Notes: generated by a model from the sequence alone, not told the origin. A stretch of DNA of 64,000 bases from Amoebophrya sp. A120 (GCA_905178155.1 CAJINV010000009.1:3218768-3282767), one strand, 5' to 3'. Numbered from the stretch's first letter, positions 35,892 to 63,360 are shown. Made by a program: numbers and translations.

Positions 35892-38800
35892 ATGGGCGAC
35901 GACCAGCACAGCCACCATTTCGAGCACAAAGACAATCCCCCACGACCCGTGATTCCATCTGGCCGACGTAATTTTCACCCTCACGACCATCCAGATCAGG
36001 GTAGAACTACTAATGCCGCCGGCCGCGACTTAGCAGAGCCGGGCAATAATATTAGACGCTTCGAAAAGAACAATGCGCGCTTCGTCCAAGAAGAGCACGA
36101 TGTCCCAAGCTACCCTTTACCCGTCGCCCCAGTTCCCACACAAGCAACGTCGGCGTTGCATACTGCGACCACGTTCGACTTCGAGGCGAAAGTTTTTCAT
36201 GCACAGGGCGCAAATGGAAATGCACATGCAGGAGCGGGCGTGGGACAACAAGGAGAAGGTGTTCGAGATCATGAACAGGCTGCCTACGGGTGCCAAGGTG
36301 CACGGGAGGAGCAGGACGATCTGCCACAAGAACGGGGAAATGTTCTTGTGCCACACGACCCTCGCGGTCGTGAACAAAACGCGAGCTTCTCCTACGACGG
36401 CGTAGAGGTGAACACCACCTTGTCCGCTGGCAATCATGGAAGCTCCTACTATCAGGAGCAAAACGACGCCAGAAGGCCGGCGGCGACGAGTACGATTGAA
36501 GACGATGTGATAAGCAGGACAGGAGCGGCTGCCGCTGCGCGGCCCGGCCGCGGCCATGTTGATATCCGGCCGTCGACACGAGACGATTTTTCGTCGATGG
36601 CCTACAATCCGAACAGAGAGACCGAGAGTTGTTATTCCTCAGCCCCGAGGGTGAGAAATGTTGACCATGCAGGCCTCACTGACACTGATGCGTATAGTGA
36701 CAAGAAGCGCAACTACCCCCGCACAGGCAGAGGGCGGCTGGAAAACAGAGAAACCAGTTTCGAGAGCAATGCCGACTGCGAAAATGGCACAGCGGCAGCG
36801 CCGGCACCGCAAAAACGACATCAGCGAAATGCCGCCGAAAACGACGAGCATCAAGGACTCCAAGATTTTATCTACCAGGCAGACTTGCCAAAGGTGGCTG
36901 TTGTGGATACATCAAACGGTGACCGCGAGCAGGGAGTGGGTTTCACGATTGAGGACCCTGAATACAACCGAGAACAGCGAGGTGCGAAGCCAATGCTCCA
37001 CCAGAATCAGCAAGAAGCCCAAGGAGAGCCCGTTGCCCAAGACGGACACCAGAAAGAAGCGTATGGTCAGCATGGTCTTCAAACAAAGAGAAAAAATCCC
37101 CGCGACACTACTAGCTCTGGATTGAGGTGCAGCGACAAGGCCGAAACCCTCCGCGCCCCCGTCGTTCCGGACTCCACACCGATTGCACCCCGGCGCGCAG
37201 AAAAGATTGACACTTCTCCCTCGCCTAATGGCAAGCTCCACATGGGCAACGACCCCCGGGATCATGATTGTGGACCCAACGACAATCTCCCTGATGTGTG
37301 TCCTGGAGTAAATAAAGTGGCGAATCTTTCATCTCCGGGGCCTCTCCTTTCCAGCTCCGTGGCCAGCATCCCCGTCTACGGGCGCCACAACGCCCCTTTT
37401 CTCAACTCCCCAAGCGACCTGCCCGAGTATTTCAACGATGAGGACTGCCGGACTTCGTACCAGGAAAATGATTCGTTACTCTCCACGTTTGCCTTCATTC
37501 AGCGCAAAAACATCAACGTGACCGCCACCGCCCGCGTTGGCCCAGGCATGGTCATCTGCATGGGCGAAGAGGTGGTTGACAACCATCGCGTGGACTTCAA
37601 CAAGCCGACTTTATTGCTCGAAGTTGTGAAGCGGATCGGCAAGGGCGGATCCGCGGAAGTGTTTGAGTGCGTGGATTTGCGAACTTGTGTTGTAGACGGA
37701 GGCTCAAGTACGACGGCGTCGGGAAGTCGTGGCAACTACAGCTGCAATCGTGACGCGTCGCGAAGTGGTGGCATTGGAAGCAGCGGCAACGGTCGCGACA
37801 GGGAGATGAAAGCTTCTCAGCTATCCGCCACCCGGTACGCATTGAAGGTCGTCTACGCACGGGACGCACGGCAAATGCGTTCGTTTGCCATGGAGGTAAA
37901 CTGGCTGCGGGCTTTGCGGGACAAAAATCGTGCGACCGCAGGGGGGAATGGCAATGCTGGCCACAACGCAAACGAGCTGCGAGTAGTGAAGATGATCGGG
38001 GAAGCGAAATTTTTTCCGAAAGACCTGGTGATCCACATTTTGCTGGAATTCGCGGACTGTGGTATGGGAGGGAAGTGTTTGTGTTGGTTGGAAACTTGCA
38101 TAAGTTGTATGTATTTTTGTGATGCGGAATAAACGTGGATGAGATGCAGCAGTGCGGGAAGCTTATTTATGTCTTCCCATGTTGCGAGTGAAGCCGCAGC
38201 CGGATGGAATTTGCCATTTTCTTACCGCGCGACAAAATATCTGCAGTAGCAGTACATTAACTGGAACTTTCTGGTTCAGCAACTGAAGAACCTTTTTTCC
38301 CCTCCCATACCCAATCTTCATTCCTTCCTCCGGAAAAACTACGAAATTTTCTCCATTTACGACATTCGCAACCTCTGGCGCGACATGGTCGCCGGTGTCG
38401 CGGCGATTCACAGCCTCGGGTTGATCCACTTTGATCTCAAACCCGCGAATTTCCTCATCGTGGACAACATCGTGAAGGTCTCTGATTTCGGTCTCGCGAG
38501 AGGGATCAATAAAGACGAAGGAATCACCCACGTCTCCCGTGATCGGCAGTGCGGCACGCCGCGCTACATGCCGCCCGAGGCGTTCTACCAGCCGGATGAA
38601 GGGGCGGCGAGTTTGAAGATGCGACCGGCGGCCGATGTTTGGGCGTTGGGGATTATCCTCTACCAATTATTGTACGGTCGGGCACCGTACGAGCATTTAG
38701 AGGGGTGCGGGATGCGGGCGCAGTTCGCCGTGGCGGATTCCCGGGTCCGGATTCTGTACTCGAAATCTCGGCGGTGGGAGCAGCAAGACGCGGCGTTATT

Positions 38801-41800
38801 CGGCCATCTGGTGTCTCTGCTGCAGGTGACGCTGCGGTGGCGTTGGGAGCGGCGGTGGGACGCGCAGACGGTGCTGAAGTATTTGGAAATGGGAGATGAG
38901 CAGTACGATGCGAATGTTCAGCCATGCCAAGCGACCACCAAGAGAAAGAATCAAAAGCTGCTGAAAATGCCGAAAAACCTTGTCAATGAAGAAGACATAA
39001 AGGGAAAAACGACGAAATGGGAGGGCCATCGGCTGTCGGACATTTACGAAGAGGAATTTATCGAGCAGACGTCGCTACCGTTGTTGGCGAAACAAGAGAT
39101 GAACTACTCCTGCAACTCGACTTCTTTCGGTGCTACGGGTGCGGAGAAAGCCGAGCTATTGGCACGACGACAGGACGGACTTGGAAACCTGGATGATGGC
39201 GGCGGCGCTACGGGCCAAATCGAGAAGGAGGTGCTGGGGTCGGGTGGTGAAGAAAAGAAAATGAGAAGCGACAAAAATATGCGAGATTTCGCAAATGAAG
39301 TAGCAGAAGAACACGAGCCAGAGCTGGCATCGTCCTCGGAGGAAGAGCATGAGTTGGGTGAAAATGCTGAGAAAGGTGCGGCATTGATGTCGCCGCAGCA
39401 GCAGCAGGTCCAAGGCGCCGCTTCCGAAGATTTTGCTTTGGAAAACAACAAAACAGCATCGCTAACTTCTGCAACACAAACCTTCGACACCGGGCAGCGA
39501 AACACGACACCAAGTGTTGCACGTGACGAAAATGACGACCCGTCGCAAGAAGACAAATTTCATTCCATGACAGAGGATCCCTCTTCAGCATCGACATCTT
39601 CCGCATCATCTCCTTGCGCCGCTTTCCTGGCCTCATCGCTTTCAACCATCATCATCACCATCATCGCTGTTTGTCTCCTCGCGGGCGCTACTGGCTTGGC
39701 AGTCCATATGGGCAACGTGAGCGAGGGGAGCAAACAGAAAGCAGAGCTGGGATCTTCAGGGGACGGTGATGAGTATCCGTTTGGCGGCTTCGGCGGCGGG
39801 CATAAGCCGAACATTTTAGTCCCAACGAGAATCTTCAACGGGGATGGAGGTGGTGGTGAGGGTGGCGGCGGTGGGGGGTCACCCAGCGGGAACTCCAGCG
39901 GCCCACCAACAGGTCTAGGAAATGATGGTCAGAGCGGGAGTGCCGGACCCGGAACCACCGCTCCTTTGCAGCAACCGACCCCTCCTGCGAGTCCTTCATC
40001 GGGCTTGTTGAGCCGCTTCCCCCCGAGACCCGTTTCCGGAGCGGAGTTTCTGGCGCCGGCGACACCAAAACCTGCAGCGCCGACGGGTGGTGCGGCAGCG
40101 CCAAAACCAGCACCGGTCGCTTCCGTTTCTGCTGCACAGGTTGCAGCTTCTGCTTCCCCCAGCCCCGCAACAGTGCTTCCCGCTGCGACGTTGCCGGCTC
40201 AGCCGGCAGTTGCTGTTCAACCGAATGCGGCAATTCCATTAACTGCAACTTCTGACGCGGAGGCGCAAGAAGGTCAAGCAGAAGGAGCTGATGCTGATGC
40301 AGTACTGAGCGCCCCGTCTGCGTCATCATCTCCTCCGGAAAGTGACCGTGCAGAAGTCGCAAGTGCTCCAGCAACGCAAGAAACAACGATCAGCGACGAA
40401 AACCAGTCGGCGCAAGAACAGGCACCCCGAGGAAGCGAAGAAGCAATGGGGACTGAAACTAATGATCGTCAGGCGCAAGAAGAAGCACAAGCAGCCCAAC
40501 AGGAGGAACAGCAAGGCGAAGTACCGCGAACTGGAACGCAATCAGACGTTGGTAGTAGTATCGACCACTCTTCCTCCACTGGAGATATCGGTTTGGGAAC
40601 AAGTGCTGCAGCTTCAGCGGGGAATACCGGCAACAGCGATCCTGGTCATGCAACGTCGAATCCGAGTCACGACGGCGGTGTGGGACGTCAGCCACAAGCT
40701 GCATCAGGCACAAGAGACGTCGAGCGAGAACGGACGCCGGAACCAAATGGCGACGGTATTGAAACTCGTGGGTCTTCTACTTCCGGTGGTGCCTCAGATC
40801 TGAATTCACCAGGAAGAAGTTCTGGGACAGAACCGACTGGCGAAAACCAGCAACCGCAGCATTTTACAACAAGTACGGGAACCGGAACGGCAGACACCGA
40901 TCGGACAAATAAGACGACATTTGCGCAGGGCCACGGCACTCCAACTTCCGGAAGTACTGCTTCCGGTGGAGGCAGCGCCTCTTCAACTTTCTTTTCCACC
41001 GAAGCAGGAAGAAACGACGGCACAAATCATGATTTACGGTGTGCGGACGCACTGCCCGCAGGCGAAACTCTGCCTATGGGTGCTGCCGCTGGAAGCGGAT
41101 CAATAGATACTGGCGAATCTCATGCTCCCCCGGTGGCTGTGGGAGATGCAGCCAGCGGCTGTCCCCCGGGAGGGCGAGAAGATGCAGAGGCTTTGCGGAC
41201 GTCTGCTGATCCTAGTTGCCCGCTCCGCCCGAGGTCGCGCTCGCCGCCCGGAAGTGTCCGTAGTGGGGGTAGTTCGGACGCTGGATCGAGCGGTCGGTCC
41301 GCTCGCGGAGGGGGACGGAGGGGGCGATCTAGCTCGGCTGGTTCTACTAGTTCGAAATCATCTGAAGACAGCGATTCAGACTCAGAATCCGATTCCGACA
41401 GCACGGAAAGGCGACCAACAGGCCCAGGAGGTGGTTCGCCGCCGCCGACTCCGAGGCCCGGCGGGAGTTCGTCCAGCACTGCAGTATGGCGGCCGAGAGG
41501 CAAAGCAGCTGCAGCAGAGCCACTTGTCCCGGAGGTGGCCCCAGAACCAGTTTCAGAGGCAGACCTCGCAGCACTGAAAACCAGGCAGGAGGAGGGGCAA
41601 AGCTGCGAAAGCCTGTTTTTGAAGGTTTTGGCTGAGTTTTTGGCTGAAGAACTACAGATGGGCGGCAAAAAGCCAAAGGATTTCTGGAACCCAGAAATAG
41701 ATGACGGTCGGGACTACCTGCAAGAAGCAAGAGATCAATTCGCAGCAGCCGGCGGACACCTAGGGCAGACAACTGCACTTGATCCGGACATTTGGACGGT

Positions 41801-44800
41801 ACTTATTCTTGGTCTCTTATCCTTTTATTTTTTTTTGTAATTTTTGTTCATTTTGTTTTGTCACCGGTTTACAAAAAAAAGGACAATGCAGTGAAAGTCG
41901 ACAAAGCAAGCAAGACGGCTCGTATTGATCCCCAGCTATGTTTCTTTGTAGTCGATGCTCCATCAACTTCGGAGCGGGCATTTTTTGGTGTCATAGTACT
42001 TGGAGATCATGTTTATTTCGCTTGGCTTCCTAGACACACTTCCTTTCCTTTGCACTTCCAGGTTGCAACGATTATGACCATGATGCCACACTGTTATGGA
42101 AATTTTCGTGCCTTCGATTTGCGAGCCATGAATAGTTGGCCATGGTTGGAGATTGATGTTTACGAAACAAACCGGTTGCAGACGACCCAGTGCCTGCCTG
42201 CAGAAGACGAGCCCTTTTTCAAACACGTGTTAAACTTTTTTCACGAACGAATTCCAAGCACCACGAACTCTGCGTCCACATCTCTCGTAGTCTGGGAACA
42301 CCCTTTGATTTTGGTTCCGGAGCGTCTTGAACCGGACGGGCGAGGCGGGTGGACTCCCATTTCTGCCAACGTCTCCGAGTCTGGTCGTGTGATTCATGAG
42401 GAGCGCTGCCGCATCGGAATGGCTACGGAATATCTTTTCCAAGCTCAAAATTGCGTTCACGAATTTGGACCCACGAATTTTGACGACCTACCATATGGTA
42501 CTTGTGATCATCTCGCATTTCACTCAAACATGGTTCTGTTTCACATTCATTGATGATATGGTGTATATCCAGCGAGGAAAAGTTACGTGGCATTTAACAT
42601 CCTCAGGTTATTGCCTTGATACGGGTCCTCGAGAGAAACTGAATCTAGATGAGAAGCCTGAACACTGGCCAGAGAAGGCGATTGCCGAAGAGCAGACGCG
42701 GCACAGCAAAGGCAGCACTGAACCTTTGGTGCACCCGAAGTGGCACGAGACGTTTCGCGCAGAGTTTTATCGGCGGGCATCCTTTTGGAGACGTGGATCG
42801 ACAGGATCGGGGGCAAAGTGGAGCTACATACATTTTCGGTGGAATTGGATCAAGGCTCGATTAAAGTCTCACCGGGATCAAAATAACAACAGACTAGATT
42901 GGAAATTTGCTACCGATGTCGGTGAGTCGTTTGTCTACAAGGCGGACTCCTTCTGTCCAACAGATGAATCAGTGCGGGCGGAGTTTGCATCCCTTCAACA
43001 AAAAATTCCCTTTGCCCGGTTAGAAAATGCAAGTAATCCAGCAGCGCACGAAACGACCACCAGGGACGAAAACCAATCGGCACAGCCAGCGCCTGAAGGC
43101 AGCGAACAAGAGGAAACCACGCAGACTGGCGCGACTCGTCAGGCGCAAGAGCACCAAGGTTCCCTCGATCTCACCAAGGTCCCCTTGAGTCCACCTGCGA
43201 CCTCACCGAGGCCGGCCCACTCGGCCACCCCCGAAAGACGAGGAGGTACCGGACCAGGTGGGCCGACAGATGTTGGAGCTGGTACTGCGGAACCGAGTGG
43301 CGGAAACCAAGTGCAGCCTGGCGCAGCACAAAATGCGGGCAGTGGCGCAAAAGCGGTATTTGAGGGGAACAGCATTCCAGCTTCCGGGAGTGCCGCAGCT
43401 TCCGGAGGAGGCAGTTTCAGCTCTTCCTCGTCCATTTTCGCTCTTCCTGGAACAGCAATTGACAGTAGAAGTCCAGCATTACGCCCTCCGCCAACGAGGC
43501 TAGCCGAGTTGAAGGTGGCGTCGCTGGATGAGCGGCAAACGGAGACGGTGAGTTGCGAGAACCTGTTTGTGGAATTTCTGGAGGAGCAGCTGGCGAAGAT
43601 TCCAGGCATGGAGGGGTTGATATGAATGGGAAAATAAGTGTAACTCCCTCTCTGGTCGTGTACCTCTTGTCCTTGAAAGATATTGCAAAATTATGTGTTG
43701 ATCAACGATTTCGATGCTGCTTATACGAAAGGCATGAGAGATCTTGTAGAGTGTGCTCAAGCTAGCCCAAAACAGCAGGATCTCGTACTAGCAATTTGAT
43801 CATCACGCCGTGCGGTTGTGCGCTGCAACCACGATTCGAATGCGCCCCCCCCGCAGGGCGAGAGGTAGACGCAAGTCAGGGTGGATGTCTTGAACTTGAT
43901 ATCGGAAACCAAAGGATTTCTGGAACGCGGATGTTGACCACGGCCGGGACTATTTGCAAGAGACAAACGCATTCTTCCAAGAATATGAAGGACCTAGTGA
44001 TGTGGTAGAGTCCGATTCTGAGGACGAAGAGGACGAGCCAGAAACCACTCAGGGCGGGAGTTTGGTACTTGGTGGAGTAGACCTCCGTGAATATCTTGTC
44101 CCGAAGCACGACTCGTTTCCACGGGATAGATGGACGGTAATTTGTCTTCGTAACTTTTTGGTTGTTGTTCATTCGCTCTGGGATTGGGAGTTTTGATTAT
44201 GCTGCATTTGATTTTGGAAAAGAGTGGCAACCTACCTCCGTTCATCACGACAGGTTCGAACGATCTTGGCTATGATGCCGTTCTGTCACGTGGACATCGG
44301 GGCGAAACCACTGAAAGATCTCGTGCAGCGGTACGACTACAGTTACTGGCCCAGCGCCGAGTACATAATTTACAGCCCCGCGCGACTGGAAACCGGGTGC
44401 GCGTTGCAGGACAAAGACTTCTTCGCTGAAGTTTGGGATTTTCTGCACGAACGCGTCACGCACCCTCCCTCCGCAACACCAGGAGCTCCTCCGGAGAGCG
44501 ACTCGGATCTGAACCGAAGTGTAATTGTCTGGGACGACCCCTCGACTTTTGCTTCTTCTTCCAAAGATGGCACGGTTCGTACCGCCGCCAGCTCGTCGGC
44601 CTCAAGCGCGGGGTATGAGGCTGCAGATGCGCACGGGACGATGCCTCTCGCATTGCGAGAGCAGCGCTGCCGAATCGCAATGACGACGGAGTTTCTTTTT
44701 CAAGCTACGGGCGAGGTGCGATTTGCGCGCGCATGGAGATTCTCAACCTTCTATGGTACTCACATACTTCGTTCAACGTACAAGTATGCGACCTTTTGTC

Positions 44801-45404
44801 GAGTCTGAAGCGGTTTTTTGAAAATTTCATTTCGACCGGAGCGACCGACTCCGCTTCCCTTCGCGCACCCGATGCTAGTTCAGGCTTTTCAATTTTGACA
44901 TACCCAAAATTGGTGTCATAGCATGATTCTGACCGATATAACCAACTCACGCCAGGTTACTGCTTGAACACCACAAAAAAGAAAGACTTGCAGCAGAAAT
45001 GGCATCCTGCAAAGCGACACCAGTGGCCTGAGGAGATAGAGTCTCGCCAGCCAGATCTGTCCCCGGATTCCTCGCCCGTCCCGATGACCTGGCACACCGA
45101 CTTCCAGCGCGAATTTCGCAAGCGCGCCAGATTTTGGCGTGAAAATTCGACCGGACGCGGGCCCGTTTGGAGTTATCGCCATTTTCGTTGGATCTGGCTA
45201 AAAGCACGGCGGATGAAAATACGCTTCCGCACGAATGCTACCGAACTGAAGTTTAACCATATTCTCGCTGAAACGCCTGACGTAGTTGACATCTACACGC
45301 ACTTTGATCCGAAGAGTGTCTTTGACCAGTTTCGTCCAATATACTGGCTGGACAAGGAAAAAGGTCAACAGTCGCGCCCGAGCATACAACCTGACATTCC
45401 GTAA
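35892..45404 (+). CDS. Mps1/TTK-like protein kinase with TM helix, S/T/P/A-rich stalk and two copies of an unrecognised Cys/Trp-rich domain (copy A)
   Basis: Kinase motifs IGKGGSAEVF, YALKVV, IHFDLKPANFLIVD, SDFGLA, CGTPRYMPPEA and ADVWALGIILYQLLYG. TM segment IIITIIAVCLLAGATGLAV at ~39648-39704. Introns at ~38063-38314, 41799-42061, 42498-42606, ~43621-43906, 44137-44253 and 44756-44955. Confidence 0.8.
38063..38309. mobile_element. Old introner-like intron in the kinase hinge of copy A (equivalent at 55247-55469 in copy B)
   Basis: TATGGGAGGGAA ... TTCCCCTCCCATA. The 5-nt register joins LLEFADC to (N)LHSFLRK. Confidence 0.65.
43621..43901. mobile_element. Degenerate introner-like intron
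   Basis: TAT...ATA ends; flanks GTTGA and TCGGA. Removal gives GL|KPKDFWN as in the paralogs. Confidence 0.55.
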
Positions 45405-47482
45405 ACACCGAAACTGGCGATGCAGTCGCCATCGAGAGGGCCGTCAGCTGCAAGATGACTGGCATATACGCCGGAGTCGCACACGTTTCCTTCACGGTTT
45501 GACCTACCAGCGTCACATGATGAATGCCTTGGTCGAAAAAATGATTCCAGCAAAACGACATGGGCTTTTCTCTCGCGTGACTCTGCTTAACCTTAAAGTA
45601 TTGAGACATGGAAAATGTAGCAGCGAAGGCCAGTGCTGTTCTACTCTTTGTCGCGACGCTGCTCCTAACTGTGACTGTCCAGAGTGTGCGTGTTGCGTTT
45701 CTTAGTGACGCACGAGAGTACTGTATTTATTGCGGCGAAGAAGTTGTAGATCTAGATCTGAATCAATCTGATTCTGAAGGAATTTCTGCTAAGAGGCATT
45801 ATTTGCCGGCTTGAGAACAAGTTGAAATGGAGCGCGGAAGTAGGCACTGCTTTGCTCCTAACTTTGTATATCTTGGAACCGTTGGTACGCTCAGAAGATC
45901 AGCTGTTAAAAGATCACAAGCGACAGCTGTAGCTGGATCATACACGGTCAGATAAGATGCGCTATGTATTGCGAACCATTTTCAAACAGTAAAGACCCTC
46001 ATACGATAAAGATTTCGAAAGACGCTGTACTGCCGCTCCTGAATATGCTATAGATAAAAAAAGAACGAAGTAATGTCGTTCGACACCGAAAGACAAAGAT
46101 CCACGAAGGAGGACCGATCATGGAAAGCGGCTGTACAAAACATGAACGTGAGGCGAGCAGGATACGAGCATCCAAAATGAAGCAAAAAGGGGTTCGAGCC
46201 TCAATCGTATGTAGAAGTAGTAGGTCACGAGCGTTCTAGTCTGGCGGATTTTACGACACCCCCCGCGCAAAACGAGCTGCAGCCCGCGAAAGTGTTTTTC
46301 AAAATAAAAAGAAGCCCCTTGGACTCCAAGAAATATGGACGCCAAAAAAATGGCAATGGGAAAGGGGTACCGAGCCCGCATGGTGTGGGCGTCATTTTTT
46401 TCCAACTTTTGAAAGCGAAAAAGTGGCCACCAAGATAAGCCATTTGGAGATCGGAGAGCCGGCCAGAAGTCGCGCTCCTTTGCCGAAAAAAACAAAAGAA
46501 ACAAAGACCGCTCAAAAGCGAAAGTCAGCCCGCGCGCTATTGGCCCGATCTTGGACGCCGAATGGGCGGGTCCCGGCGCGGACCCGGGTGGGAACATGAC
46601 ATGGGAGGGAGGCTTCCTGTTTTGAATGCCAAAAGCTGCGCCTCCCGCCAAAGACTGAACGCATTGCGCCTCCCGGTTGGGGGCCTCCAATAGGCAACCC
46701 CGGGTAAGGGCCCAGGCGGGGCCACAGCATGTGAGGAAGGTTTTGCCTTTTGAGCGGCAGGAGGGTGCCGCCTTTCGCCAAACATTGAGAGCCAGCCCGC
46801 ATGCTATTGGCCCAGTTTGGGGCGTCTACGGGGCAAGCCCTGGCGCGAGCCATGGGCGGCCCATGGCTTGCAGGGCAGGTTCGCGCTTTTGAAAGCAGTG
46901 GGGCCACGACTTTCGCCCAGCCAAAAATAAAAACCAGTGTGTCCTCATTACCTCCGTCGCAGCGGCTATATTTTAGGTGGATATGAGCAAGACCAGGGAG
47001 GGCTAGATCAAGATAGATGACGGTTGGATCCGTTTCGACATTTGCAAGAAAGAACCTGAAAGCCGTAGGATTCCTTATTGTATTCTCTATTTGATTTTTT
47101 TCGCAGGCAGCACGTGGCACGCATGACGGTCTAGATATTGTGTGATATATTTTTTACGAAACATTATTTACGGTGAATGGTAGGTTCTGCTTATAAGATT
47201 TCCCATAAGATTTTTCGTAAAAAAATAGCTTCTGATACGCGTGTGGCAGATGCAGTTGCTCTACAGCCTTCTTCTTTGCTTTCGACAGATTTCTCCGTGA
47301 CTCCTTTTAGCAATTTTTTGCGCCACGAAAGCACCAATATTTTTGTATGATTTGATATTAGCGCCAGCGCGTTCGGGATATGTTTTTGTATAATGTTGTT
47401 GAACTTCAATACATAGAAGTGCCCCTACTTACAGCGGATAATACTGCAAAATAATACTACTGTACTGGTTCACTTGCTTACG

Positions 47483-49630: not shown

Positions 49631-49708
49631 CATGATTATTGGCGCGCGTGGCTTGTGCAGCGCGCCTATGTGGACCCCTTTTGCAAGAAGCGCTTACTTT
49701 TAGTACTT

Positions 49709-52700: not shown

Positions 52701-55700
52701 ACAGTGGAACGCACACGGATGGACATTTTTCTGCCAAACCCGAGAGAAGATTTTCGCACGGGCAAGTTTATCGACGTTTCTGAAAGCCTCAGAAGCTCGT
52801 AATCCCTGGTGGAGGTCCGAAGGACACAAATAAAAGTGGGAGAGTGCATCAGGGACGAGCAGCTTTCTGAATGAGGTCCAGATTGTGCCGCATGCATTAT
52901 TGGCCCTTGTTCCCCGGAATAAAGAGTTTCTTGGTACTACATTGTTTCGAGTAAAACAAGTTGTAAATAAATATCGGCGCGACAACTACTATATCGACAG
53001 GCGGAGCAGTATCACCTGTTTATTACCTCGAACCAGTGACTGTGACTGCTCCTCCTGTGGTGCGACGACCTCTAGATAATTTACCCTATGGGCGGCGACC
53101 GGCACAGCAACCATTTTGAGCACAAAGACAATCCCCCACGACCCGTGATTCCATCTGGCCGACGTAATTTTCACCCTCACGACCATCCAGATCAGGGTAG
53201 GGCTACTAATGCCGCCGGCCGCGACTTAGCAGAGCCAGGCAATAATATTAGACGCTTCGAAAAGAACAATGCGCGCTTCGTCCAAGAAGAGCACGATGTC
53301 CCAAGCTACCCCGTACCCGTCGCCCCAGTTCCCACCCAAGCAACGTCGGCGTTGCATACTGCGACCACGTTCGACTTCGAGGCTAAAGTTTTTCATGCAC
53401 AGACCGGAAATAGAAATGCACATGCAGGAGCCGGCGTGGGACAACAAGGACAAGGAGAAGGTGTTCGAGATGAACAGGCTGCCTACGTCGAGTGGCAAGG
53501 TGCACGGGAGGAGCAGGACGATCTGCCACAAGAACGGGGAAATGTTCTTGTGCCACGCGACCCTCGCGGTCGTGAACGAAACGCGACCTTCTCCTACGAC
53601 GGCGTAGAAGTGAACACCACCTTGTCCGCCGGCAATCATGGAAGCTCCTACTATCAGGAGCAAAACGACGCCAGGAGGCCGGCGGCGACGAGTACGATTG
53701 AGGACGATGTGATAAGCAGGAACGCGGCTGCCGCTGCGCGGCCCGGCCGCGGCCATGTTGATATCCGGCCGTCGACACGAGACGACTTTTCGTCGACGGG
53801 CTACAATCCGAACAGAGAAACCGAGAGCTGTTATTCCTCGGCTCCGAGGGTGAGAAATGACCTTGCAGGCCTTACTGACGCCTATCGCGAAAAAAAACGC
53901 AACTCCAGCACAGTCAGTGTCAGAGGGCGGCTGGAAAACAGAGAAACCAGTTTCGATAGCAATGCCGACTGCGAAAATGGCACAGCGGGAGCGCCGGCAC
54001 CGCAAGAACGATATCAGCGAAATGCTGTCGAGAACGACCAGCGTCAAGGACTCCAAGATTTTGTCTACCAGGCGGACCTGCCAAAGGTGGCTGTTGTGGA
54101 TACATCAAACGGTGACCGCAAGCAGGGAGTGGGTTTCACGATTGAGGACCCTGAATACAACCGAGAACAGCGAGGTGCGAAGCCAATGCTCCACCAGAAT
54201 CAGCAAGAAGCCCAAGGAGAGCCCGTTGCCCAAGACGGACACCAGAAAGAAGCGTATGGTCAGCATGGTCTTCAAACAAAGAGAAAAAATCCCCGCGACA
54301 CTACTAGCTCTGGATTGAGGTGCAGCGACAAGGCCGAAACCCTCCACGCCCCCGTCGTTCCGGACTCCACACCGATTGCACCCCGGCGCGCAGAAAAGAT
54401 TGACACTTCTCCCTCGCCTAATGGCAAGCTCCACATGGGCAACGACCCCCGGGATCATGATTGTGGACCCAACGACAATCTCCCTGATGTGTGTCCTGGA
54501 ATAAATAAAGTGGCGAATCTTTCATCTCCGGAGCCTCTCCTTTCCACCTCCGTGGCCAGCATCCCCGTCTACGGGCGCCACAACGCCCCTTTTCTCAACT
54601 CCCCAAGCGACCTGCCCGAGTATTTCAACGACGAGGACTGCCGGACTTCGTACCAAGAAAACGATTCGCTACTCTCCACGTTTGCCTTCATTCAGCGCAA
54701 AAACATCAACGTGACCGCCACCGCCCGCGTTGGCCCAGGCATGGTCATCTGCATGGGCGAAGAGGTGGTTGACAACCATCACGTGGACTTCAACAAGCCG
54801 ACTTTATTGCTCGAAGTTGTGCAGCGGATCGGCAAGGGCGGATCCGCGGAAGTGTTTGAGTGCGTGGATTTGCGAACTTGTGTGGTAGACGGAGGCTCAA
54901 GTACTACGGCGTCGGGAAGTGGTCGTGGCAACAATTATAGCTGCAATCGTGACGCGTCGCGAAGTGGTGGCATTGGAAGCAGCGGCAACGGTCGCGACAG
55001 GGAGATGAACGCTTCTCAGTTATACGCCACCCGATACGCGTTGAAAGTCGTGTACGCACGGGACGCGCGGCAAATGCGTTCGTTTGCCATGGAGGTAAAC
55101 TGGCTGCGGGCTTTACGGGATAAAAATCGCAATGGCAATGCTGGCCACAACGCAGACGAGCTGCGGGTAGTGAAGATGATCGGGGAAGCGAAATTTTTTC
55201 CGAAAGACCTGGTGATCCACATTTTGCTGGAATTCGCGGACTGTGGTATGAGAGGGAATTGTAATTGTTTGTGTTGGTAGTTTGTTTGAATCATATGTAT
55301 TTTTGTGATGCGGAATGAAACGCAGTGGGGGAAGCTTACTCCTAATTTTTCATGCGAGTGAACCCGCAGGCGGAACTGGATGTAATTTTCAATTATCAAT
55401 TTTTGTACCGCGTCTGCACTACAACTAGAACTGGTTCAGCAACTGAAGCACTTTCTTTCCCCTCCCATACCCAATCTTCATTCCTTCCTCCGGAAAAACT
55501 ACGAAATTTTCTCCATTTACGACATCCGCAACCTCTGGCGCGACATGGTCGCGGGCGTCGCGGCGATTCACAGCCTCGGGTTGATCCACTTTGATCTCAA
55601 ACCCGCGAATTTCCTCATCGTGGACAACATCGTGAAGGTCTCTGATTTCGGCCTCGCGAGAGGCATCAATAAAGATGAAGGAATCACCCACGTCTCCCGG

Positions 55701-58700
55701 GATCGCCAGTGCGGCACGCCGCGCTACATGCCGCCCGAGGCGTTCTACCAGCCGGATGAGGGATCGGCGAGTTTGAAGATGCGACCGGCTGCCGATGTTT
55801 GGGCGTTGGGGATCATCCTCTACCAGTTATTGTACGGTCGAGCGCCGTACGAGCATTTAGAGGGGTGCGGGATGCGGGCGCAGTTCGCCGTGGCGGATTC
55901 CCGGGTCCGGATTCTGTACTCGAAATCCCGGCGGTGGGAGCAGCAAGACGCGCAGTTGTTCGGCCATCTGGTGTCTTTACTGCAGGTCACACTGCGGTGG
56001 CGTTGGGAAAGACGGTGGGACGCGCAGACGGTGTTGAAGTATTTGGAAATGGGAAATGAGCAGAATGATGCGAGTTTGCAGCCCTGCCAAGGGACCACCA
56101 AGACCCGGAAGAATCAAAAGCTGCTGAAAATGCCGAAAAATCTGGTCAATGAAGAGGACATGAAGGGAAAAACGACGAAATGGGAAGGCCATCGGCTGTC
56201 GGACATTCACGAAGAAGAATTTATCGAGCAGACGTCGTTACCGCTGCTAGCGAAACAAGAAATGAACTATTCCTACAACTCGACATTCGGTGCTACGGAC
56301 GCGGAGAAAGCAGAGCTATTGGCACGACGACAGGACGGACTTGAACACATCCAGGATGGTCGCGGCGGCGCTACGGCGGGACAAATCGAGAAGGGAATGC
56401 TTGAGACGGGTAGTGAAGAAAAGAAAATGAGAAACGTCAACGTCCGAGAGGTTGGACTTGGAAATGAAGCAGCAGAAGAACACGAGCCAGAGTTGGCATC
56501 ATCCTCAGAGGAAGAGCAAGAGAAGATGGATGAAAAGGCTGAGAAAGCTGCGGCATTGATGTCGCAACAGCAGCAGGTCGCGCAAGGAGCCGCTGCCGAA
56601 GGTTTTGCTTCGGAAAACAACAAAACAGCATCGCTAACTTCTGCAACACAAACTTTCGACAACGAGGACGAGCAGCGAAACACGACACCAAGTGTTGCAC
56701 GTGACGAAAATGAGGACCCGTTTCAAGAAGACAAATTTCATTCCATGACAGCAGATCCCTCCTCATCATCGACATCTTCCGCATCATCTCCTTGCGCCGC
56801 TTTCCTGGCCTCATCGCTCTCAACCATCATCATCACCATCATCGCTGTTTGTCTCCTCGCGGGCGCTACTGGCTTGGCAGTTCATATGGGCAACGTGAGC
56901 GAGGGGAGCAAACAGAAAGCAGAGCTGGGATCTTCAGGAGACGGTGATGCTTATCCGTTTGGCGGCTTCGGCGGCGGGCACAAGCCGAACATTTTAGTCC
57001 CGACGAGAATCTTCAACGGGGATGGAGGCGGTGGTGGTGGTGGCGGCGGTTCACCTAAAGGGACCTCCAGCGGTCGTCCACCAACAGGTCGAGGAAATGA
57101 TGGTCAGGGCGGGAACGCTGGAACAACAGCTCCTTTGCAGCAACCAGATCCTCCTGCGAGTTCTTCATCGGGCTTGTTGAGCCTCTTCCCCCCGGGACCT
57201 GTTTCCCGACCAGAGTTTCTAGCACCGGCGAAACCAAAACCAAAACCTGCAGCACCGACGGGTGGTGCGGCAGCGCCAAAACCGGCACCGGTCGCTTCCG
57301 CTTCTGCTACACCGGTTGCAGCTTCTGCTGCACAGGTTGCAGCTGCTGCTTCCGCCAGCCCACCAACAGTGCTTCCCGCTGCGACGGTGCCGGCTCAACC
57401 GGCAGTTGCTGTTCAACCGAATGCGGCAATTCCATCAACTGCAACTTTTGACCCGGAGGCGCAAGAAGGTCAAGCAGAAGCTCATGCAGATTCAGTATCG
57501 GCCGCCCCGTCTCCGTCATCATCTCCTCTGGATGAAAGTGATCGTGCAGATGAAGTCGCAAGTGCTCCAGCAGCACAAGAAACGACGATCAGTGAAGATG
57601 AAAACCAGTCGGCGCAGGAACAGGCACACCAAGAAAGCCAAGAAGGAATACAGACTGGAACTAATGATCGTCAGGCGCAAGAAGTAGAAGAAGCACAAGC
57701 AGCCCAACAGGAGGAACAGCAAGGCGAAGGACCGCGAAGTGGAACGCAAGCAGACGGTGGTAATAGTACTGACCACTCGTCTTCCTCCACTGGAGATATC
57801 GGTTTGGGAACAAGTGCTGCAGCTTCAGCGGGGAATACCGGCAACAGCGATCCTGATCATGCAACGTCGAATCCGAGTCACGACAGCGGTGTGGGACGTC
57901 AGCAACCAGCTGCTTCAGGCACAGGAGACGTCGAGCGAGAACGGACGCCGGAACCAAACGGCGACGGTATTGAAACTCGTGGATCTTCCACTTCCGGTGT
58001 CGCCTCAGATCTAAATTCACCAGGAAGAAGTTCTGGGACAGAACCGACTGGCGAAAACCAGCAACCGCAGCATTTTACAACAAGTACGGGAACGGCAGAC
58101 ACCGATCGGACAAATAAGACGACATTTGCGCAGGGCCACAGCACTCCAACTTCCGGAAGTACTGCTTCCGGTGGAGGCAGCGCCTCTTCAACTTTCTTTT
58201 CCACCGAAGCCGACGGCACAAATCATGATTTACGGCGTGCGGACGCACTGTCCGCAGGCGAAACTCTGCCTATGGGTGCTGCCGCTGGAAGCGGATCATT
58301 AGATACTGGCGAATCTCATGCTCCCCCGGTGGCTGTGGGAGATGCAGCCAGCGGCTGTCCCCCGGGAGGGCGAGAAGATGCAGAGGCTTTGCGGACGTCT
58401 GCTGATCCAAGTTGCCCGCTCCGCCCGAGCTCGCGCTCGCCGCCCGGAAGTGTCCGTCGTGGGGGTAGTTCGGACGCTGGATCGAGCGGTCGGTCCGCTC
58501 GCGGAAGGGGACGGAGGGGGCGATCTAGCTCGGTTGGTTCTACTAGTTCGAAATCATCTGACAGCGATTCAGACTCAGAATCCGATTCCGACAGCACGGA
58601 AAGGCGACCAACAGGCCCAGGAGGTGGCTCGCCGCCGCCGACTCCGAGGCCCGGCGGGAGTTCGTCCAGCACTGCAGTATGGCGGCCGAGAGGCAAAGCA

Positions 58701-60199
58701 GCTGCAGCAGAGCCACTTGTCCCGGAGGTGGCCCCAGAACCAGTTTCGGAGGCAGACCTCGCAGCGCTGAAAACCAGGCAGGAGGAGGGGCAAAGCTGCG
58801 AAAGCCTGTTTTTGAAGGTTTTGGCTGAATTTTTGGCTGAACTACAGATGGGCGACAAGAAGCCAAAGGATTTCTGGAACCCAGAAATAGATGACGGCAG
58901 GGACTACCTGCAAGAAGCAAGAGATCAATTCGCAGCAGCCGGCGGACACCTAGGGCAGACAACTGCACTTGATCCGGACATTTGGACGGTACTTATTCTT
59001 GGTCTCTTATTCTTTTATTCGCAAATTTGTAATTTTTGTTCATTTTGTTTTGTCACCGGTTTACAAAAAAAAGGACAATGCAGTGAAAGTCGACAAAGCA
59101 AGCAAGACGGCTCGTATTGATCCCCAGCTATGTTTCTTTGTAGTCGATGCTCCATCAACTTCGGAGCGGGCATTTTTTGGTGTCATAGTACTTGGAGATC
59201 ATGTTTATTTCGCTTTGCTTCCTAGACACACTTCCTTTCCTTTGCACTTCCAGGTTGCAACGATTATGACCATGATGCCACACTGTTATGGAAATTTTCG
59301 TGCCTTCGATTTGCGAGCCATGAATAGTTGGCCATGGTTGGAGATTGATGTTTACGAAACAAACCGGTTGCAGACGACCCAGTGCCTGCCTGCAGAAGAC
59401 GAGCCCTTTTTCAAACACGTGTTAAACTTTTTTCACGAACGAATTCCAAGCACCACGAACTCTGCGTCCACATCTCTCGTAGTCTGGGAACACCCTTTGA
59501 TTTTGGTTCCGGAGCGTCTTGAACCGGACGGGCGAAGCGGGTGGACTCCCATTTCTGCCAACGTCTCCGAGTCTGGTCGTGTGATTCATGAGGAGCGATG
59601 CCGCATCGGAATGGCTACGGAATATCTTTTCCAAGCTCAAAATTGCGTTCACGAATTTGGACCCACGAATTTTGACGACCTACCATATGGTACTTGTGAT
59701 CATCTCGCATTTCACTCAAACATGGTTCTGTTTCACATTCATTGATGATATGGCGTATATCTAGCGAGGAAAAGTTACGTGGCATTTAACATCCTCAGGT
59801 TATTGCCTTGATACGGGTCCTCGAGAGAAACTGAATCTAGATGAGAAGCCTGAACACTGGCCAGAGAAGGCGATTGCCGAAGAGCAGACGCGGCACAGCA
59901 AAGGCAGCACTGAACCATTGGTGCACCCGAAGTGGCACGAAACGTTTCGCGCAGAGTTTTATCGGCGGGCATCCTTTTGGAGACGTGGATCGACAGGATC
60001 AGGGGCAAAGTGGAGCTACATACATTTTCGGTGGAATTGGATCAAGGCTCGATTAAAGTCTCACCGGGATCAAAATAACAACAGAATAGATTGGAAATTT
60101 GCTACCGATTCGTTTGTCTACAAGACGGACTCCTTCTGTCCAACAGATGAATCAGTGCGGGCGGAGTTTGCATCCCTTCAACAAAAGATTCCCTTCGCC
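49709..60199 (+). repeat. Segmental duplication, copy 2
   Basis: Begins ACTTTTAGTACTTGATGACTGTGC as at 32547. Similarity ends at QQKIPFA. Confidence 0.9.
49912..50790 (+). pseudogene. Duplicated 3' fragment (RRM2 exons only) of the SR splicing factor gene
   Basis: Near-identical to 32749-33628 but lacks the promoter, RS tract and RRM1 exons. Confidence 0.7.
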
Positions 60200-60202: not shown

Positions 60203-61118
60203 GGGTTTATACACTGTGCGCAGACCATCGCAATCGATGAGCAGACCACTGATTCGAGATAAGAACTTGAAGATAGGTCTCGTGGCGCAGCCCACAACTT
60301 AGTCGCCCGTTTTGCCATCGAGTTCCTTTTTTGATTGCATGGCGATTCGGAGCTAAAAATGATGCAGCGATGTGCATTTTCGATACGCGGATCTACATCT
60401 AGTTCTAGAAAGAACCAGCAAGAAGAAAGATTTAGTTTCATTTTCGACTTGAGATGGATCCATTAATTTGTACCAGAGCATCGAGTCAGCTGTCCGGTTA
60501 AGTACCGTAACCAAGGAAAGAGCGCTGGTTTTTTGCGGTTGATCATTTTCTGCTGTGTTAGCGAGAATATTGATTTGAAGATGATGAAATTGGGTTTCTG
60601 GCTGGATTGGCTTCTCTGCTCCCCCACCGGCTACTATTCTGGGTTCGACTATCTATTCATTAAAGCCAGTATCTTCTAGTCATTATCATTTTGATGTATT
60701 TGTTGTTTTGCTCCTTTGCTTATGTTTATGACGGCCAGCTACAACGCAAACACTTTACTTCAATTTTTACAGGCAGGCATGGGCTAACCGTTGGTGTAAT
60801 TTTTTTGTTCACTTGGTTACTGTTGTAAGCTTTTTGATATGTAGTTTTGGAATTTGAAATGTGTCAACTATTTCATTGCCCCGTAGCAAATCCCCTCATT
60901 TGTAGAATTTGTAGGATACGGATATTTTGATTTTCATTCTCTTCCTGTCATATGACTGCGGATTGACGGCATTGTGAAATCCAAATCATGTTGTGCATCA
61001 CGAAAGCAAAATTGTATTTCGGTATTAAATTTTTTATTGGAAGGACGACGTTTCTTCTTGTGTCATTCATGATCTTTCGTGAGTGTAGAGCCTATTAGTG
61101 GCAGAGAATCAAAGCAGG

Positions 61119-63360
61119 ATGGTGCTAAGGCGACTGCGAAGGTCGGGCATTGTGCTTCGCTTTCTTTTCGCGAACAGCTTCTTCGATGTCGGCTGGACGG
61201 TGAACAGCATTGTTGGTCATGGAAAAGTGCAGGATCACCGTGATCTCGTCGGAAAAGTACAGGCACAAGAGCAGCAGGCAGGCACCGGAGAACAAGATAG
61301 TATTAGTGGCAAGAAACATAAACATTCCAAGGAAAAGGACGACTGGCATTGCGGCAGCAATAATTCTCAACAGACTTGCGATGGAGCCATCCCAGCTGCA
61401 GCGGTAGGTGAATGCGAAGCTGTGATGTCAAGCCAAAGATGCCAGAGCGCTGTGAAAAGCAAAACTGTACCTGAAAGTCGCCTATGTACAGGAGGTATAT
61501 CTACTTTAAGTACGGTACGATTTTTGGGTTCTAGATCCCGAGCTCGAGCGCGACTCTACACGTGACAATCATAGACAATCGAATCACGCGAGTGCATCAT
61601 GAAAGTGCCGCACGTGAGAAAAGTTGTAGGACTTCCTCTCAATGAAAATAATTCAGGTTCGTGTTTTCCGTTCTTCGCGGCAGCGCTACGGGATTGGCGT
61701 ACTGGAACGGAGCGGCAGGTTAGGTTGGATAAAACCCAATCCTCTGTTGATGGGGCCATGCGTGACTTCACGACTGCCGAAAAGAATCCGACAGGGCGCA
61801 AGGCCGCTGGTAGCCAGACAAGTCCGGACGCGAGATCAGGGCGGAGTACCCGAGCTCCACCAGCGGGAAGACAAAATTTGCCGCGAGAACAATTAGCGCC
61901 AGCTCCTCAAGAAGCCATTGCTCCAGCTCTGCCGGTCGGTGACCAAGCAGACGAAGACTTGCTCAGCAAAATCATGGGCGCGGAAGCGGGCCTCATGTTC
62001 TCCGGTGAGAAAAAACTGCTCAACGAAAACCAAGGGGTTTTGAGTTTCCTTTCCGCCCAAGACGTCGGAAAGCTGTTGCAGTCCACTAAGGCCGGCTTCG
62101 GTGGAAAAGTTGCTGTTGCAGCCCATGCGCAGCACCGCAGTGACACTGCCATGGAGAGCCGTACAGAAAGCTGTGAGGATCTCTTTCTTGAGGTCTTGCG
62201 CGAACGGATTGGAGCGAAGCGACCCGAGGATTATTGGAATAGGCAGATAGACATGGGGGTCGATTACCTTGAACATTTCCTCTCCCAGATGCATCGCGAC
62301 CGAAATGCATGGAAACTTCATCCACCGCAGAGAATCACATCGCCAGGGGAAAAACCGAAGCATGATTGGACCGTACTTTATAATATATACTTCATAAATT
62401 CATCATAAAAGCCTTTTTTTGTCAGCATTTAATCGCATTTGATTTGCCGTGTGGCTGTGTTTTCGTTCTTGGCAACGCCAGCGGTATCTTACTGGAAAAG
62501 TCTTGCCCGATGACTAGCTACTGGTTAGAAGATTTGACAAACTCTGATGTTGAAAAAGATCAGTCATTTTTTCGCACTAATAGGTTTACCTGTTGATGAC
62601 GATGGCGTCAGAAACATGTGGGCCCGCAGCACCACATCGGCGCGCGGATAGCACCAACAAGTGGCTCCTGTACAACTCAAAAGCTCTGGCCACGGGTTGT
62701 CACAGAAACGATCGAGCTTTCTTCCGCGAAGTCCTAGATTTTTTTCACGAGGATGTGCCGGAGCAGAGAAGGTCTTTTATGACGAGGCTTCTCAAACGAG
62801 ACACGCAGTCAAAGGTAGTGATCTGGAATCCGCCTAAAACCAATTCTTTTTCTCGGCAGCGTGCCGGCGGCGGTCCACCTGTACGGCTAGTGGACATGTC
62901 TCTGAACCCGAATCAAAAGGCCTTGGATGAGAGGTGTCGGCTCGGGATGGCGACCGAATTTCTTTTCCAAAAACCCAGCCAAGTATACGGACGCTATTTC
63001 CCGGTTCGATTGGGTTATTGCTTGAACACATCCGCGGATCTGTCAGATGACAATGGTGCGAGGCCATGGATAAACTTTTTTCATCGTGATCCTTTACCGC
63101 TTGACGCGCAATATTACACTGCGTTTCGGAAGATGTTCCGGAAGATAGCGCAGAAGTGGCGGACCGATTCTGATGGCTCGGACCTTCGCTGGTCGTACGA
63201 TCAGCTGCAGTGGGACTGGCGGAGCTTACATGGGAAACGGTTGAAACACACGCGTGAGTATCGGGGAAAGCATCCAAGCCTGCCCGTGCCGGTGATGTTA
63301 GCCGACAGGCCTTCAGAGTTTCTCGTCCAGGTTCCAACAAAAATCCAGGATGCCGTGTAG
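61119..63360 (+). CDS. Kinase-less paralog of 47483-49630 (F-box-like motif plus the unrecognised domain); 5' exon uncertain, ORF from 61599 is solid
   Basis: CEDLFLEVL..RPEDYWNRQIDMGVDY..WT|VYLLMTMASETC..DRAFFREVLDFFHE..RCRLGMATEFLFQ..GYCLNT..FRKIAQKWRTDSDGSDLRWSY. GT-AG intron at 62373-62583. Confidence 0.7.

Follow-up and report, generated by a model that had tools for sequence, protein, structure and literature searches.

What kind of protein is encoded by two large genes of Amoebophrya sp. A120, a Syndiniales marine parasite of algae, in which a complete kinase, a membrane helix and an orphan domain follow one another? The genes, K1 (35892-45404) and K2 (53088-60202), are located in a stretch of 64,000 nucleotides, here called the window, and each is followed by a kinase-less gene with the same domain, D1 (47483-49630) and D2 (3′ end at 63360). 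An earlier note had proposed that they encode inverted receptor kinases paired with soluble versions of the ectodomain. Our analysis leans towards this answer: K1 and K2 are somewhat likely to be Amoebophrya-specific type-II receptor-like Ser/Thr kinases paired with secreted partners. The features are as follows, with "ectodomain" used for the copies of the orphan domain in the K genes.

32547..49709, + strand: tandem repeat unit 1 (upstream region, K1, D1), from repeat search and blastn
35593..35622, + strand: last part of the non-coding 5′ leader exon that precedes K1, exact and genome-unique match of an RNA contig end
35892..38111 (end approximate), + strand: K1 coding exon 1, disordered N-terminus and kinase N-lobe, from the translation
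about 38112-38290, + strand: K1 intron after exon 1, start of exon 2 not pinned
38295..38930, + strand: K1 kinase C-lobe (HFDLKPANFLIVD, DFG, GTPRYMPPEA), Pfam Pkinase 5e-26, best PDB match TTK, dN/dS 0.05
39618..39704, + strand: K1 predicted TM helix AAFLASSLSTIIITIIAVCLLAGATGLAV, KD19 = 2.62
39714..41603, + strand: K1 stalk, 630 aa, S/G/A/P/T-rich low complexity, from composition; RNA contigs with 100% identity on 40347-41372
41604..41798, + strand: K1 ectodomain 1 part A (CESLFLKVLAEFL...DFWNPEIDDGRDYL...DIWT), closing the big exon, donor GTACTT; RNA joint 41797>42061 (+1) and frame check
42062..42497, + strand: K1 ectodomain 1 exon B (VATIMTMMPHC...FFKHVLNFFHE...RCRIGMATEYLFQ), GT..AG RNA joints on both sides and family homology
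42607..43618, + strand: K1 exon C (GYCLDTG...WSYIHFRWNWIKARLK), RNA contigs 42606-43330 and 43301-43618; mid-stalk and domain motifs in the translation
43905 to ~44127, + strand: K1 ectodomain 2, PKDFWNADVDHGRDYL and acidic insert, from a 1772-nt RNA contig and tblastn
~44254-44757, + strand: K1 ectodomain 2 exon B′, from tblastn
~44955-45404, + strand: K1 ectodomain 2 exon C′ with stop at its end, from tblastn
47483..49630, + strand: D1, kinase-less, four coding pieces, 82-89% identical to annotated P0009 over the full length
53088..55250 (end approximate), + strand: K2 coding exon 1, disordered N-terminus and kinase N-lobe, from the translation
55455..58988, + strand: K2 exon 2 with C-lobe, linker, predicted TM helix (56796-56882), stalk and domain part A; CESLF at 58797, donor GTACTT after 58988
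59254-59689, + strand: K2 ectodomain exon B, splice sites as in K1
59799-60202, + strand: K2 ectodomain exon C with stop at its end, splice sites as in K1
61863..63360, + strand: D2, kinase-less, from homology; N-extension and part A 61863-62381, B and C in one ORF 62584-63360

The window contains a 17.2-kb tandem duplication, in which 32547-43016 recurs at 49710-60199 (repeat spacing 17.16-17.21 kb, 94-100% identity); the blastn blocks showed about 87-94% identity with stretches up to 100%. Both kinase genes have the part order described before: disordered N-terminus, complete kinase, one TM helix, a stalk of about 630 aa instead of the roughly 600 aa first estimated, and the orphan domain of about 330 aa, which is present twice in K1 and once in K2. 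Exon 1 of K1 encodes a disordered stretch of about 560 aa, followed by the G-loop GKGGSAEV, beta-3 ALK, the alpha-C Glu and a low-complexity insert, and this N-lobe is conserved in 12 paralogs. An acidic linker separates the C-lobe from the hydrophobic helix in the big ORFs of K1 and K2, and the stalk contains 15% S, 15% G, 13.5% A, 11% P and 8% T. Exon C of K1 stays in frame and goes on to encode a second stalk, which is partial, and then helix 1 of ectodomain 2 (CENLFVEFLEEQL); the joint 43618>43905, found in the 1772-nt contig, is non-canonical (GA..CG) but in frame. The second domain of K1 is the product of a fusion with the next unit and groups with the C6a ectodomain in the domain tree, while K2 terminates directly after ...QQKIPFA. 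D1 is intact, with exons at about 47483-48100 (signal-like N-terminus, N-extension, part A), 48295-48753 (B) and 48903-49022 plus 49385-49630 (C); its N-terminus reads MRFSQRS...MIMLCLSCFAAGALG, and its annotated relative P0009 has 464 aa. K1, K2, D1 and the 3′ end of D2 were found where they had been placed, but the 5′ end of D2, put at ~61119 in the earlier note, was not: neither this end nor a signal peptide was found, and homology begins at 61863. Copies of D2 occur on C13 (98% identical) and at C9:2.505 Mb (80% identical).

The kinase C-lobe, TM helix, stalk and first domain helix are located in a single ORF of 1151 codons in K1 and 1191 codons in K2, the K1 stalk sharing its open frame with the C-lobe and part A of the domain. 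In 12 or more of the 14 paralogs, the ORF from the C-lobe to part A is open over 1096-1396 codons, which puts this anatomy far beyond chance; chance ORFs and merged gene models were dismissed on this ground. On the RNA side, contigs gave three in-frame splices: A>B, B>C, and from exon C, with stalk 2 and A′, to the next exon. The K1 leader, a sequence unique in the genome, with stops in all frames and located ahead of the start codon, is joined by splicing to ectodomain exons, which supports one transcription unit. The idea that kinase, TM helix and domain share one mRNA was thus borne out for the domain exons but not for the kinase: the RNA contigs leave the kinase region 38050-39250 uncovered, and one contig splices the leader directly to 41702, bypassing kinase, TM helix and stalk. 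Both facts count against a receptor, as do a contig depth of 2-4 on the stalk versus 16-37 on the ectodomain exons and the public annotation, in which the ectodomain of the C4 copy is modelled as a separate 515-aa protein. They might mean that kinase-TM and ectodomain are mostly distinct products of alternative cis-splicing or spliced-leader trans-splicing, and that the fused frame is minor or non-functional. We consider this decidedly unlikely, since the first helix and Cys conserved in the domain are missing from the skipping form, as is a signal peptide, and since a kinase mRNA must read through TM helix, stalk and part A, no stop occurring in the K1 frame downstream of the C-lobe before 41838. 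Furthermore, in at least 12 paralogs the stalk has diverged and is rich in indels, yet the frame is not interrupted. Contig depth says little about expression, and in an mRNA of 9.5 kb higher coverage towards the 3′ end is to be expected. Six gene ids were searched in the expression tables of PMC6176090 and were absent there.

By similarity the kinase is TTK/Mps1-like, in agreement with the first reading. Protein-level searches of the K and D genes were done exon by exon, not on joined spliced proteins. In the PDB search the best solved match of the K1 C-lobe was TTK (2e-24), followed by PLK3 as the next family (5e-14), so that the catalytic domain is nearest TTK among all solved kinases; for the relative L002, nothing but TTK chains passed 1e-20. 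The TTK signatures HxDLKPANFLIVD and GT..YMPPEA and the activation-segment region could be read directly in the K genes. Calling the kinase "derived from Mps1", a wording that rests on similarity, would at best be loosely right. The K1 N-lobe alone gave no PDB match, probably due to its low-complexity insert, and Pfam detected no domain in the N-terminal 746 aa, nor could a targeting domain be recognised at the N-terminus. Most of the proteins returned by a homologous-protein search with the C-lobe were bacterial kinases; one was a EukProt relative, and none was a named Mps1. The linker-TM region gave no match. All catalytic motifs are invariant in the paralogs and kinase dN/dS is 0.04-0.06, which suggests an active enzyme; a pseudokinase was dismissed in view of the full set of catalytic motifs. 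Candidate loci for a canonical Mps1 in A120 are located on C14 and C67.

Canonical TTK/Mps1, a dual-specificity kinase of the spindle checkpoint, is a soluble protein, as a rule encoded by one gene and directed to kinetochores via N-terminal motifs, whereas A120 has about 14 genes of the K type with TM helix, stalk and a putatively extracytosolic domain. Literature searches turned up neither a membrane-anchored Mps1 nor an account of the K/D family, and the Amoebophrya genome paper makes no mention of kinases of any kind. A TM helix follows the kinase in all nine TTK-like loci inspected in A120 (L001-L009), and the outside relative P0017 looks tail-anchored. Dinoflagellate kinetochores attach to the nuclear envelope. 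Along with the TTK-like catalytic domain, these points would suit Mps1 paralogs that reside in internal membranes (ER or nuclear envelope), have the kinase on the cytoplasmic or nucleoplasmic side and the domain on the luminal side, and work in the kinetochore and spindle system that is embedded in membrane during the closed mitosis of dinoflagellates, or else in some other process of an organelle. We regard this as improbable, because fourteen copies with hypervariable luminal domains and secreted partner genes are unlike a core mitotic function and because a 630-aa mucin-like stalk suggests surface display.

As the earlier note had claimed, a single hydrophobic helix separates kinase and domain; no other K1 segment exceeds 1.3 in KD19, the N-terminus being hydrophilic and the maximum of 1.29 falling within the kinase fold. 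The helix and its flanks are nearly invariant in 12 paralogs. Its flanking charges do not decide the orientation, and the hydropathy scan revealed no N-terminal signal sequence in the K proteins. The signal-like hydrophobic start noticed in D1 was confirmed and recurs in eight of nine full-length annotated D-type models. This would place the orphan domain outside the cytosol and is consistent with an N-in/C-out (type II) layout of the K proteins. Their order of kinase, TM helix and C-terminal domain is that of PknB-like type II proteins; for the extracytosolic placement, the signal-like starts of the paralogs are the one line of evidence. We infer that the K proteins would be type II proteins of the plasma membrane; compared with type I receptor kinases, in which a signal peptide and an N-terminal ectodomain precede a C-terminal kinase, their order is inverted. 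In the relative L003, the C-terminal TM flank carries more positive charge, and parasite lineages related to Amoebophrya export kinases, both of which would fit an N-out orientation with an exported kinase, as among the secreted and exported kinases of Apicomplexa, and a cytosolic C-terminal domain. Such an arrangement is very improbable given the missing signal peptide and the approximately 1200 residues, including a folded kinase, that precede the helix, since signal-anchor insertion rules do not lead one to expect translocation of such a long folded N-terminal part. In addition, the signal-like starts of the domain paralogs mark the domain as the exported part.

Pfam searches of all domain exons and 10 family proteins detected nothing except Pkinase, and no PASTA or other known bacterial sensor repeats. 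AlphaFold models of P0003 and P0012 had core blocks with pLDDT 80-97. Foldseek gave no PDB match at E ≤ 0.001 for either model, and as both exceed 400 residues a weak single-domain match could be missed; likewise, with models of this size, VIA-align wide reached Z = 5.6 at best in one, over a hairpin of 45 residues, and 3.6 in the other. The ESM Atlas contained no usable match, a homologous-protein search with the A25 protein P0015 returned only itself, and no homolog was found outside Amoebophrya. The domain is confidently defined and mostly helical. Its tree splits into two old clades, K-type and D-type (100/100 support), whose subtypes travel together in four congruent pairs, and within one locus the K and D domains are about 30-33% identical. 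The comparison of ectodomain and kinase called for in the earlier note gave omega values of 0.2-0.5 and about 0.05, respectively; gene-wide positive selection was not seen in the ectodomain at these values, which counts against a receptor.

Also counted against a receptor is a relative, about 50% identical in the kinase, that has a RING finger, normally cytosolic, after its single TM helix. A C-terminal RING on the same kinase-TM-linker plan needs surroundings like those of the cytosol, and the host side would offer them. The TM helix might span the limiting membrane of the parasite and display the C-terminal module into host cytoplasm or nucleoplasm, where it would work not as a sensor but as an effector; the kinase would regulate it or report on it from the parasite side, and the D proteins would be free effectors of this kind. 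The signal-like starts of the D proteins and a lineage-specific, fast-evolving family, as often seen among effectors, would agree with this. We nevertheless judge it unlikely: the domain has no recognisable enzymatic fold, the stalk and the N-glycosylation sequons resemble an ordinary extracellular stalk, and a RING relative just about 50% identical in the kinase may differ in topology.

The pairing of kinase and kinase-less genes, which had been expected to recur across the genome, was found at 11 of the 12 loci examined (12 of the 14 kinase loci; C24:188 kb and C26:392 kb are outside this set), with a D gene within about 10 kb downstream of the kinase gene, and all 12 have the order kinase, TM helix, stalk and domain. 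Between K1 and the C4 copy, dS was 0.05 in the linker-TM region and saturated in the ectodomain, and the pattern was reversed between K1 and K2. The family has evolved by cassettes, the conserved module of N-terminus, kinase and TM helix having a divergence history unlike that of the ectodomain and its D partner. Exchange probably took place in the low-complexity stalk. The K/D linkage and the congruent subtypes could be due to en-bloc duplication and nothing more.

For the type-II receptor-like kinases that we favour, the following mechanism can be proposed. The long N-terminal part with the TTK/Mps1-like kinase would stay in the parasite cytosol, the invariant TM helix would serve as signal anchor, and the mucin-like stalk and mostly helical domain would be displayed outside, while the downstream gene would supply a secreted D-type paralog of the domain. 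The displayed domain might bind a ligand, either the co-inherited D partner or a host surface molecule; binding would cluster the receptor, and the conserved kinase would relay the signal inside the parasite.

PknB/PrkC-type Hanks kinases are described as having an N-terminal cytosolic kinase, one TM helix and a C-terminal extracellular PASTA sensor (PMC4601284). The K proteins share this part order and, presumably, the topology with kinase inside and sensor outside; however, homology is limited to the kinase fold, and a eukaryotic origin, the lack of PASTA, a mucin-like stalk and a paired secreted paralog set them apart. With RTKs, plant RLKs and Entamoeba TMKs they have in common a single-pass membrane kinase, a variable ectodomain and lineage-specific expansion, but those are type I proteins, and the K kinase comes from another family. 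No eukaryotic precedent for an inverted receptor kinase was found in the literature. The suggested parallel to Brassica SRK/SLG is loose. It holds for the tight linkage of a receptor kinase gene to a secreted same-domain gene and for the joint inheritance of subtypes. It fails in that SLG closely copies the ectodomain of the SRK in its own haplotype, whereas the D genes form an old separate clade, not recent copies, and the K/D loci are many paralogs in one genome rather than alleles.

More speculatively, and with considerable doubt, the family might serve cassette-type recognition, in which the conserved Mps1-derived kinase/TM module is recombined via the stalk onto diverged ectodomains, each co-inherited with its secreted partner as a cognate ligand-receptor set for host or self/kin/mating recognition. 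More broadly, Mps1 of Syndiniales might then be a general membrane signalling chassis with swappable outward modules (orphan domain, RING, others).

Amoebophrya and other Syndiniales kill bloom-forming dinoflagellates, and to our knowledge nothing is known of how Syndiniales sense or choose their hosts. Expanded membrane kinases with variable outward domains and linked secreted partners are obvious candidates for recognition machinery, which can be tested with recombinant proteins without genetics. For protein families, the gain is the helical domain found in this genus. The K family appears to be a new type of surface receptor restricted to this lineage; if this is true, it would be a eukaryotic receptor-like kinase in the bacterial orientation, with an N-terminal kinase, built from a spindle-checkpoint kinase.

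Translation of the window confirmed the order of parts that the earlier note had proposed for two kinase genes, K1 and K2 (disordered N-terminus, kinase, TM helix, stalk, and one or two copies of a C-terminal domain), and also the presence of the same domain in two kinase-less genes, D1 and D2. The four genes are:

35892-45404: K1, TTK/Mps1-like kinase gene with two domain copies
47483-49630: D1, kinase-less gene with the same domain
53088-60202: K2, TTK/Mps1-like kinase gene with one domain copy
ending at 63360: D2, kinase-less gene with the same domain

K1 and K2, which both lie within a 17.2-kb tandem duplication, share a common layout. Exon 1 encodes about 560 disordered residues followed by the kinase N-lobe (GKGGSAEV, ALK lysine, alpha-C Glu), which is interrupted by a low-complexity insert. 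A short intron (roughly 180 nt, with approximate ends) separates it from a second exon that exceeds 1100 codons. The parts encoded there are, in order, alpha-D/E, the C-lobe (HFDLKPANFLIVD, DFG, GTPRYMPPEA), an acidic linker, one hydrophobic helix (KD19 = 2.62), an S/G/A/P/T-rich stalk of 630 aa and, at the 3' end, the opening helix of the C-terminal domain (CESLFLKVLAEFL...DFWNPEIDDGRDYL). The remainder of the domain is encoded by two more exons, and its motifs include MMPHC, FFKHVLNFFHE, VVWEHP, RCRIGMATEYLFQ, GYCL, and WSYIHFRWNW. In K2 a stop codon follows directly after the single domain; in K1 the frame continues through part of another stalk and then another copy of the domain, which has diverged. 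In D1 and D2 the domain is preceded by a different N-terminal extension, and kinase, TM helix and stalk are absent from both. Every search was performed exon by exon. The DNA gives good support for the architecture of K1 and K2, and the RNA supports it in part.

The upstream neighbours in the window are ordinary by translation, with an ORF for an EF-hand protein (calcineurin-B/recoverin-like) at 5924-6583 and a multi-exon gene for an SNF2-type helicase with long disordered inserts at 17480-24290. The region 27000-30500 is G+C-rich (up to 61%) and contains overlapping Arg/Ala/Gly-rich ORFs on both strands, none of them a gene-like frame.

Informative RNA consisted of the assembled contigs of a single transcriptome-like run. 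Contigs identical to the K1 stalk were found at low depth (40347-41372), and three joints were identified further downstream. Two of these, 41797>42061 and 42496>42606, have GT..AG ends, and the third, 43618>43905, has the non-canonical ends GA..CG. All three are in frame according to codon arithmetic and homology, the peptides across them being ...DIWT/VATIMTMMPHC, ...DDLPY-G-YCLDTG, and ...AKIPGMEG/.PKDFWNADVDHGRDYL. The GA..CG intron (43619-43904, 286 nt), which is supported by a 1772-nt RNA contig, is an instance of the non-canonical introns reported for the genus. No contig of this run covered the kinase of K1, an absence that proves nothing either way.

In one RNA contig, the 30 letters ahead of 41702 did not fit the local sequence and matched exactly 35593-35622. 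This segment occurs once in the genome and precedes the K1 start codon by 270 nt; its surroundings contain stop codons in every frame. The corresponding junction is non-canonical (CT..GA), omits 6079 nt encoding the N-terminus, kinase, TM helix and stalk, and lands in the middle of ectodomain exon A. An RNA therefore exists that joins the K1 5' leader to the ectodomain exons and skips the kinase, which places leader and ectodomain exons in one transcription unit. This RNA may represent an alternative isoform or result from aberrant splicing; as the domain's first conserved helix and Cys are missing from it, and it has no signal peptide, it does not look like a form that makes a working domain. 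Since the first stop codon is located at 41838, any kinase-encoding K1 mRNA must read through the TM helix, the stalk and part A of the domain. A full-length K1 mRNA extending from kinase through domain is inferred.

The best solved relatives of the K1 C-lobe were 22 TTK entries (about 2e-24), with PLK3 as the next family (5e-14), which agrees with the Mps1/TTK-like assignment made from motifs. For L002, a relative whose kinase lies within one ORF, only TTK matches spanning both lobes were obtained at E <= 1e-20. All catalytic motifs were invariant across 12 paralogs and the C-lobe dN/dS was 0.04-0.06 at dS 0.2-0.8; the family members look like working, strongly constrained kinases.

For the C-terminal domain, 15 relatives were found among 1.84 billion representative proteins, all of them from Amoebophrya sp. 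A120 or A25; a potato match (E = 3.5e-4) was spurious. Pfam contained no family for the domain. Two AlphaFold models of domain proteins had confident, mostly helical cores, for which Foldseek, the ESM Atlas and exhaustive structural alignment against 48,161 PDB representatives gave no convincing match. Weak or absent matches are no proof of a new fold, and a match to one domain can be missed in models longer than 400 residues.

A search of the A120 genome (115.5 Mb, 401 contigs), in which one locus matches an annotated A120 protein at 100% identity, revealed about 14 kinase copies with C-lobe identities of 92-100%, each adjoining a cluster of domain exons. Twelve loci, K1, K2 and ten others, were compared. 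All carried the N-terminus, N-lobe, C-lobe, linker-TM, stalk and domain on one strand, and the pairing with a downstream kinase-less gene seen in the window recurred within about 10 kb at 11 of the 12. One locus on contig C24 (C24a) has two domain copies, as in K1. Beyond the window end, at a distance of 10-15 kb (C9:3293021-3298122), further D-type exons represent at least two kinase-less genes, so the cluster extends past D2.

In a tree of exon B, the domains of kinase genes (K-type) and of kinase-less genes (D-type) formed two clades (100/100), and in four subtype pairs a K ectodomain shared its relatives with the D gene next to it; en-bloc duplication alone would explain this congruence. 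The second domain of K1 and D1 both paired with a unit on contig C6 (C6a), which identifies K1 as a fusion of two adjacent units that arose when one D gene and the following kinase-TM part were lost. Similar multi-domain fusions occur in the annotated proteins P0008 and P0001. Divergence was mosaic: between K1 and the C4 copy, linker-TM dS was 0.05 and the ectodomain was saturated, and between K1 and K2, ectodomain dS was 0.01-0.04 and kinase dS 0.14-0.22. The dN/dS comparison suggested in the earlier note gave, where measurable, ectodomain values of 0.2-0.5 (K-type) and 0.17-0.31 (D-type), which are five- to tenfold higher than in the kinase, yet below 1; for near-identical pairs (dS about 0.006) omega is meaningless. 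The K2-D2 unit (52542-64000) was 99.3% identical over 10 kb, including intergenic DNA, to a copy on another contig (C13:248465-268464, L018/L019), which is either a very recent segmental duplicate or assembly redundancy (redundant haplotype).

In three paralogs on contigs C6 and C24 (L024:6979-7232, L026:6899-7488, L028:6886-7539), additional gaps of ~230-320 nt, which K1 and K2 lack, break the C-lobe into two or three segments. The gaps resemble recently gained introns or introners in a nearly invariant coding region. The published A120 genome paper emphasizes non-canonical introns and introner elements and does not mention kinases.

With respect to topology, the single TM helix between kinase and domain and both its flanks (PCAAFLASSLSTIIITIIAVCLLAGATGLAVHMGNVSEGNKQKAELG) hardly varied among 12 copies. 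The charges beside the helix give no information on orientation, and the N-terminus of the K proteins has no hydrophobic segment. The signal-like N-terminus noticed in D1, basic and then hydrophobic, was also present in eight of nine annotated full-length D-type proteins, with KD10 values of 2.7-3.1 for the four strongest. If the free domain enters the secretory pathway, the fused domain would most simply be extracytosolic too, and the ~1200 residues with a folded kinase preceding the TM helix should stay cytosolic. The K proteins are thus predicted to be type II membrane kinases.

Nine more distant TTK-like loci (L001-L009; contigs C2, C7, C22, C10, C3, C18) had C-lobe identities of 38-57%. 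In all nine, a strong hydrophobic helix follows the kinase in the same or the next ORF, with 400-1500 mostly low-complexity residues past it, and no candidate for a TM-less Mps1 was found among them. P0017 (EukProt g18421.t1), a 1004-aa TTK-like kinase outside the annotated A120 set (C-lobe identity 55%), has a TM helix that resembles a tail anchor and is separated from the C-terminus by 20 residues. A membrane-anchored Mps1-like kinase thus seems to be a lineage feature, with the K1/K2 family as one elaboration of that plan. One of the nine loci, L004 (3251-6781; C22:551 kb), consists of a single 1177-codon ORF in which a TTK-like kinase is followed by one TM helix, a G/P/S/A linker of 600 aa and, at the C-terminus, a C3HC4 RING finger, which places a cytosolic-type domain on the far side of the single TM helix. 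This calls for caution with a simple 'outside = extracellular' reading and motivates the alternative of C-terminal modules that are directed toward the host cell.

Amoebophrya sp. A120 is a syndinian parasite of dinoflagellates. The K family is like known receptor-like kinases in kind, but differs from them in the inverted order of parts, the Mps1-type catalytic domain, the orphan ectodomain, the linked, putatively secreted paralogs and the cassette-like evolution. Among several readings of these sequences, the best is that the K/D pairs may act as a receptor with a secreted partner.
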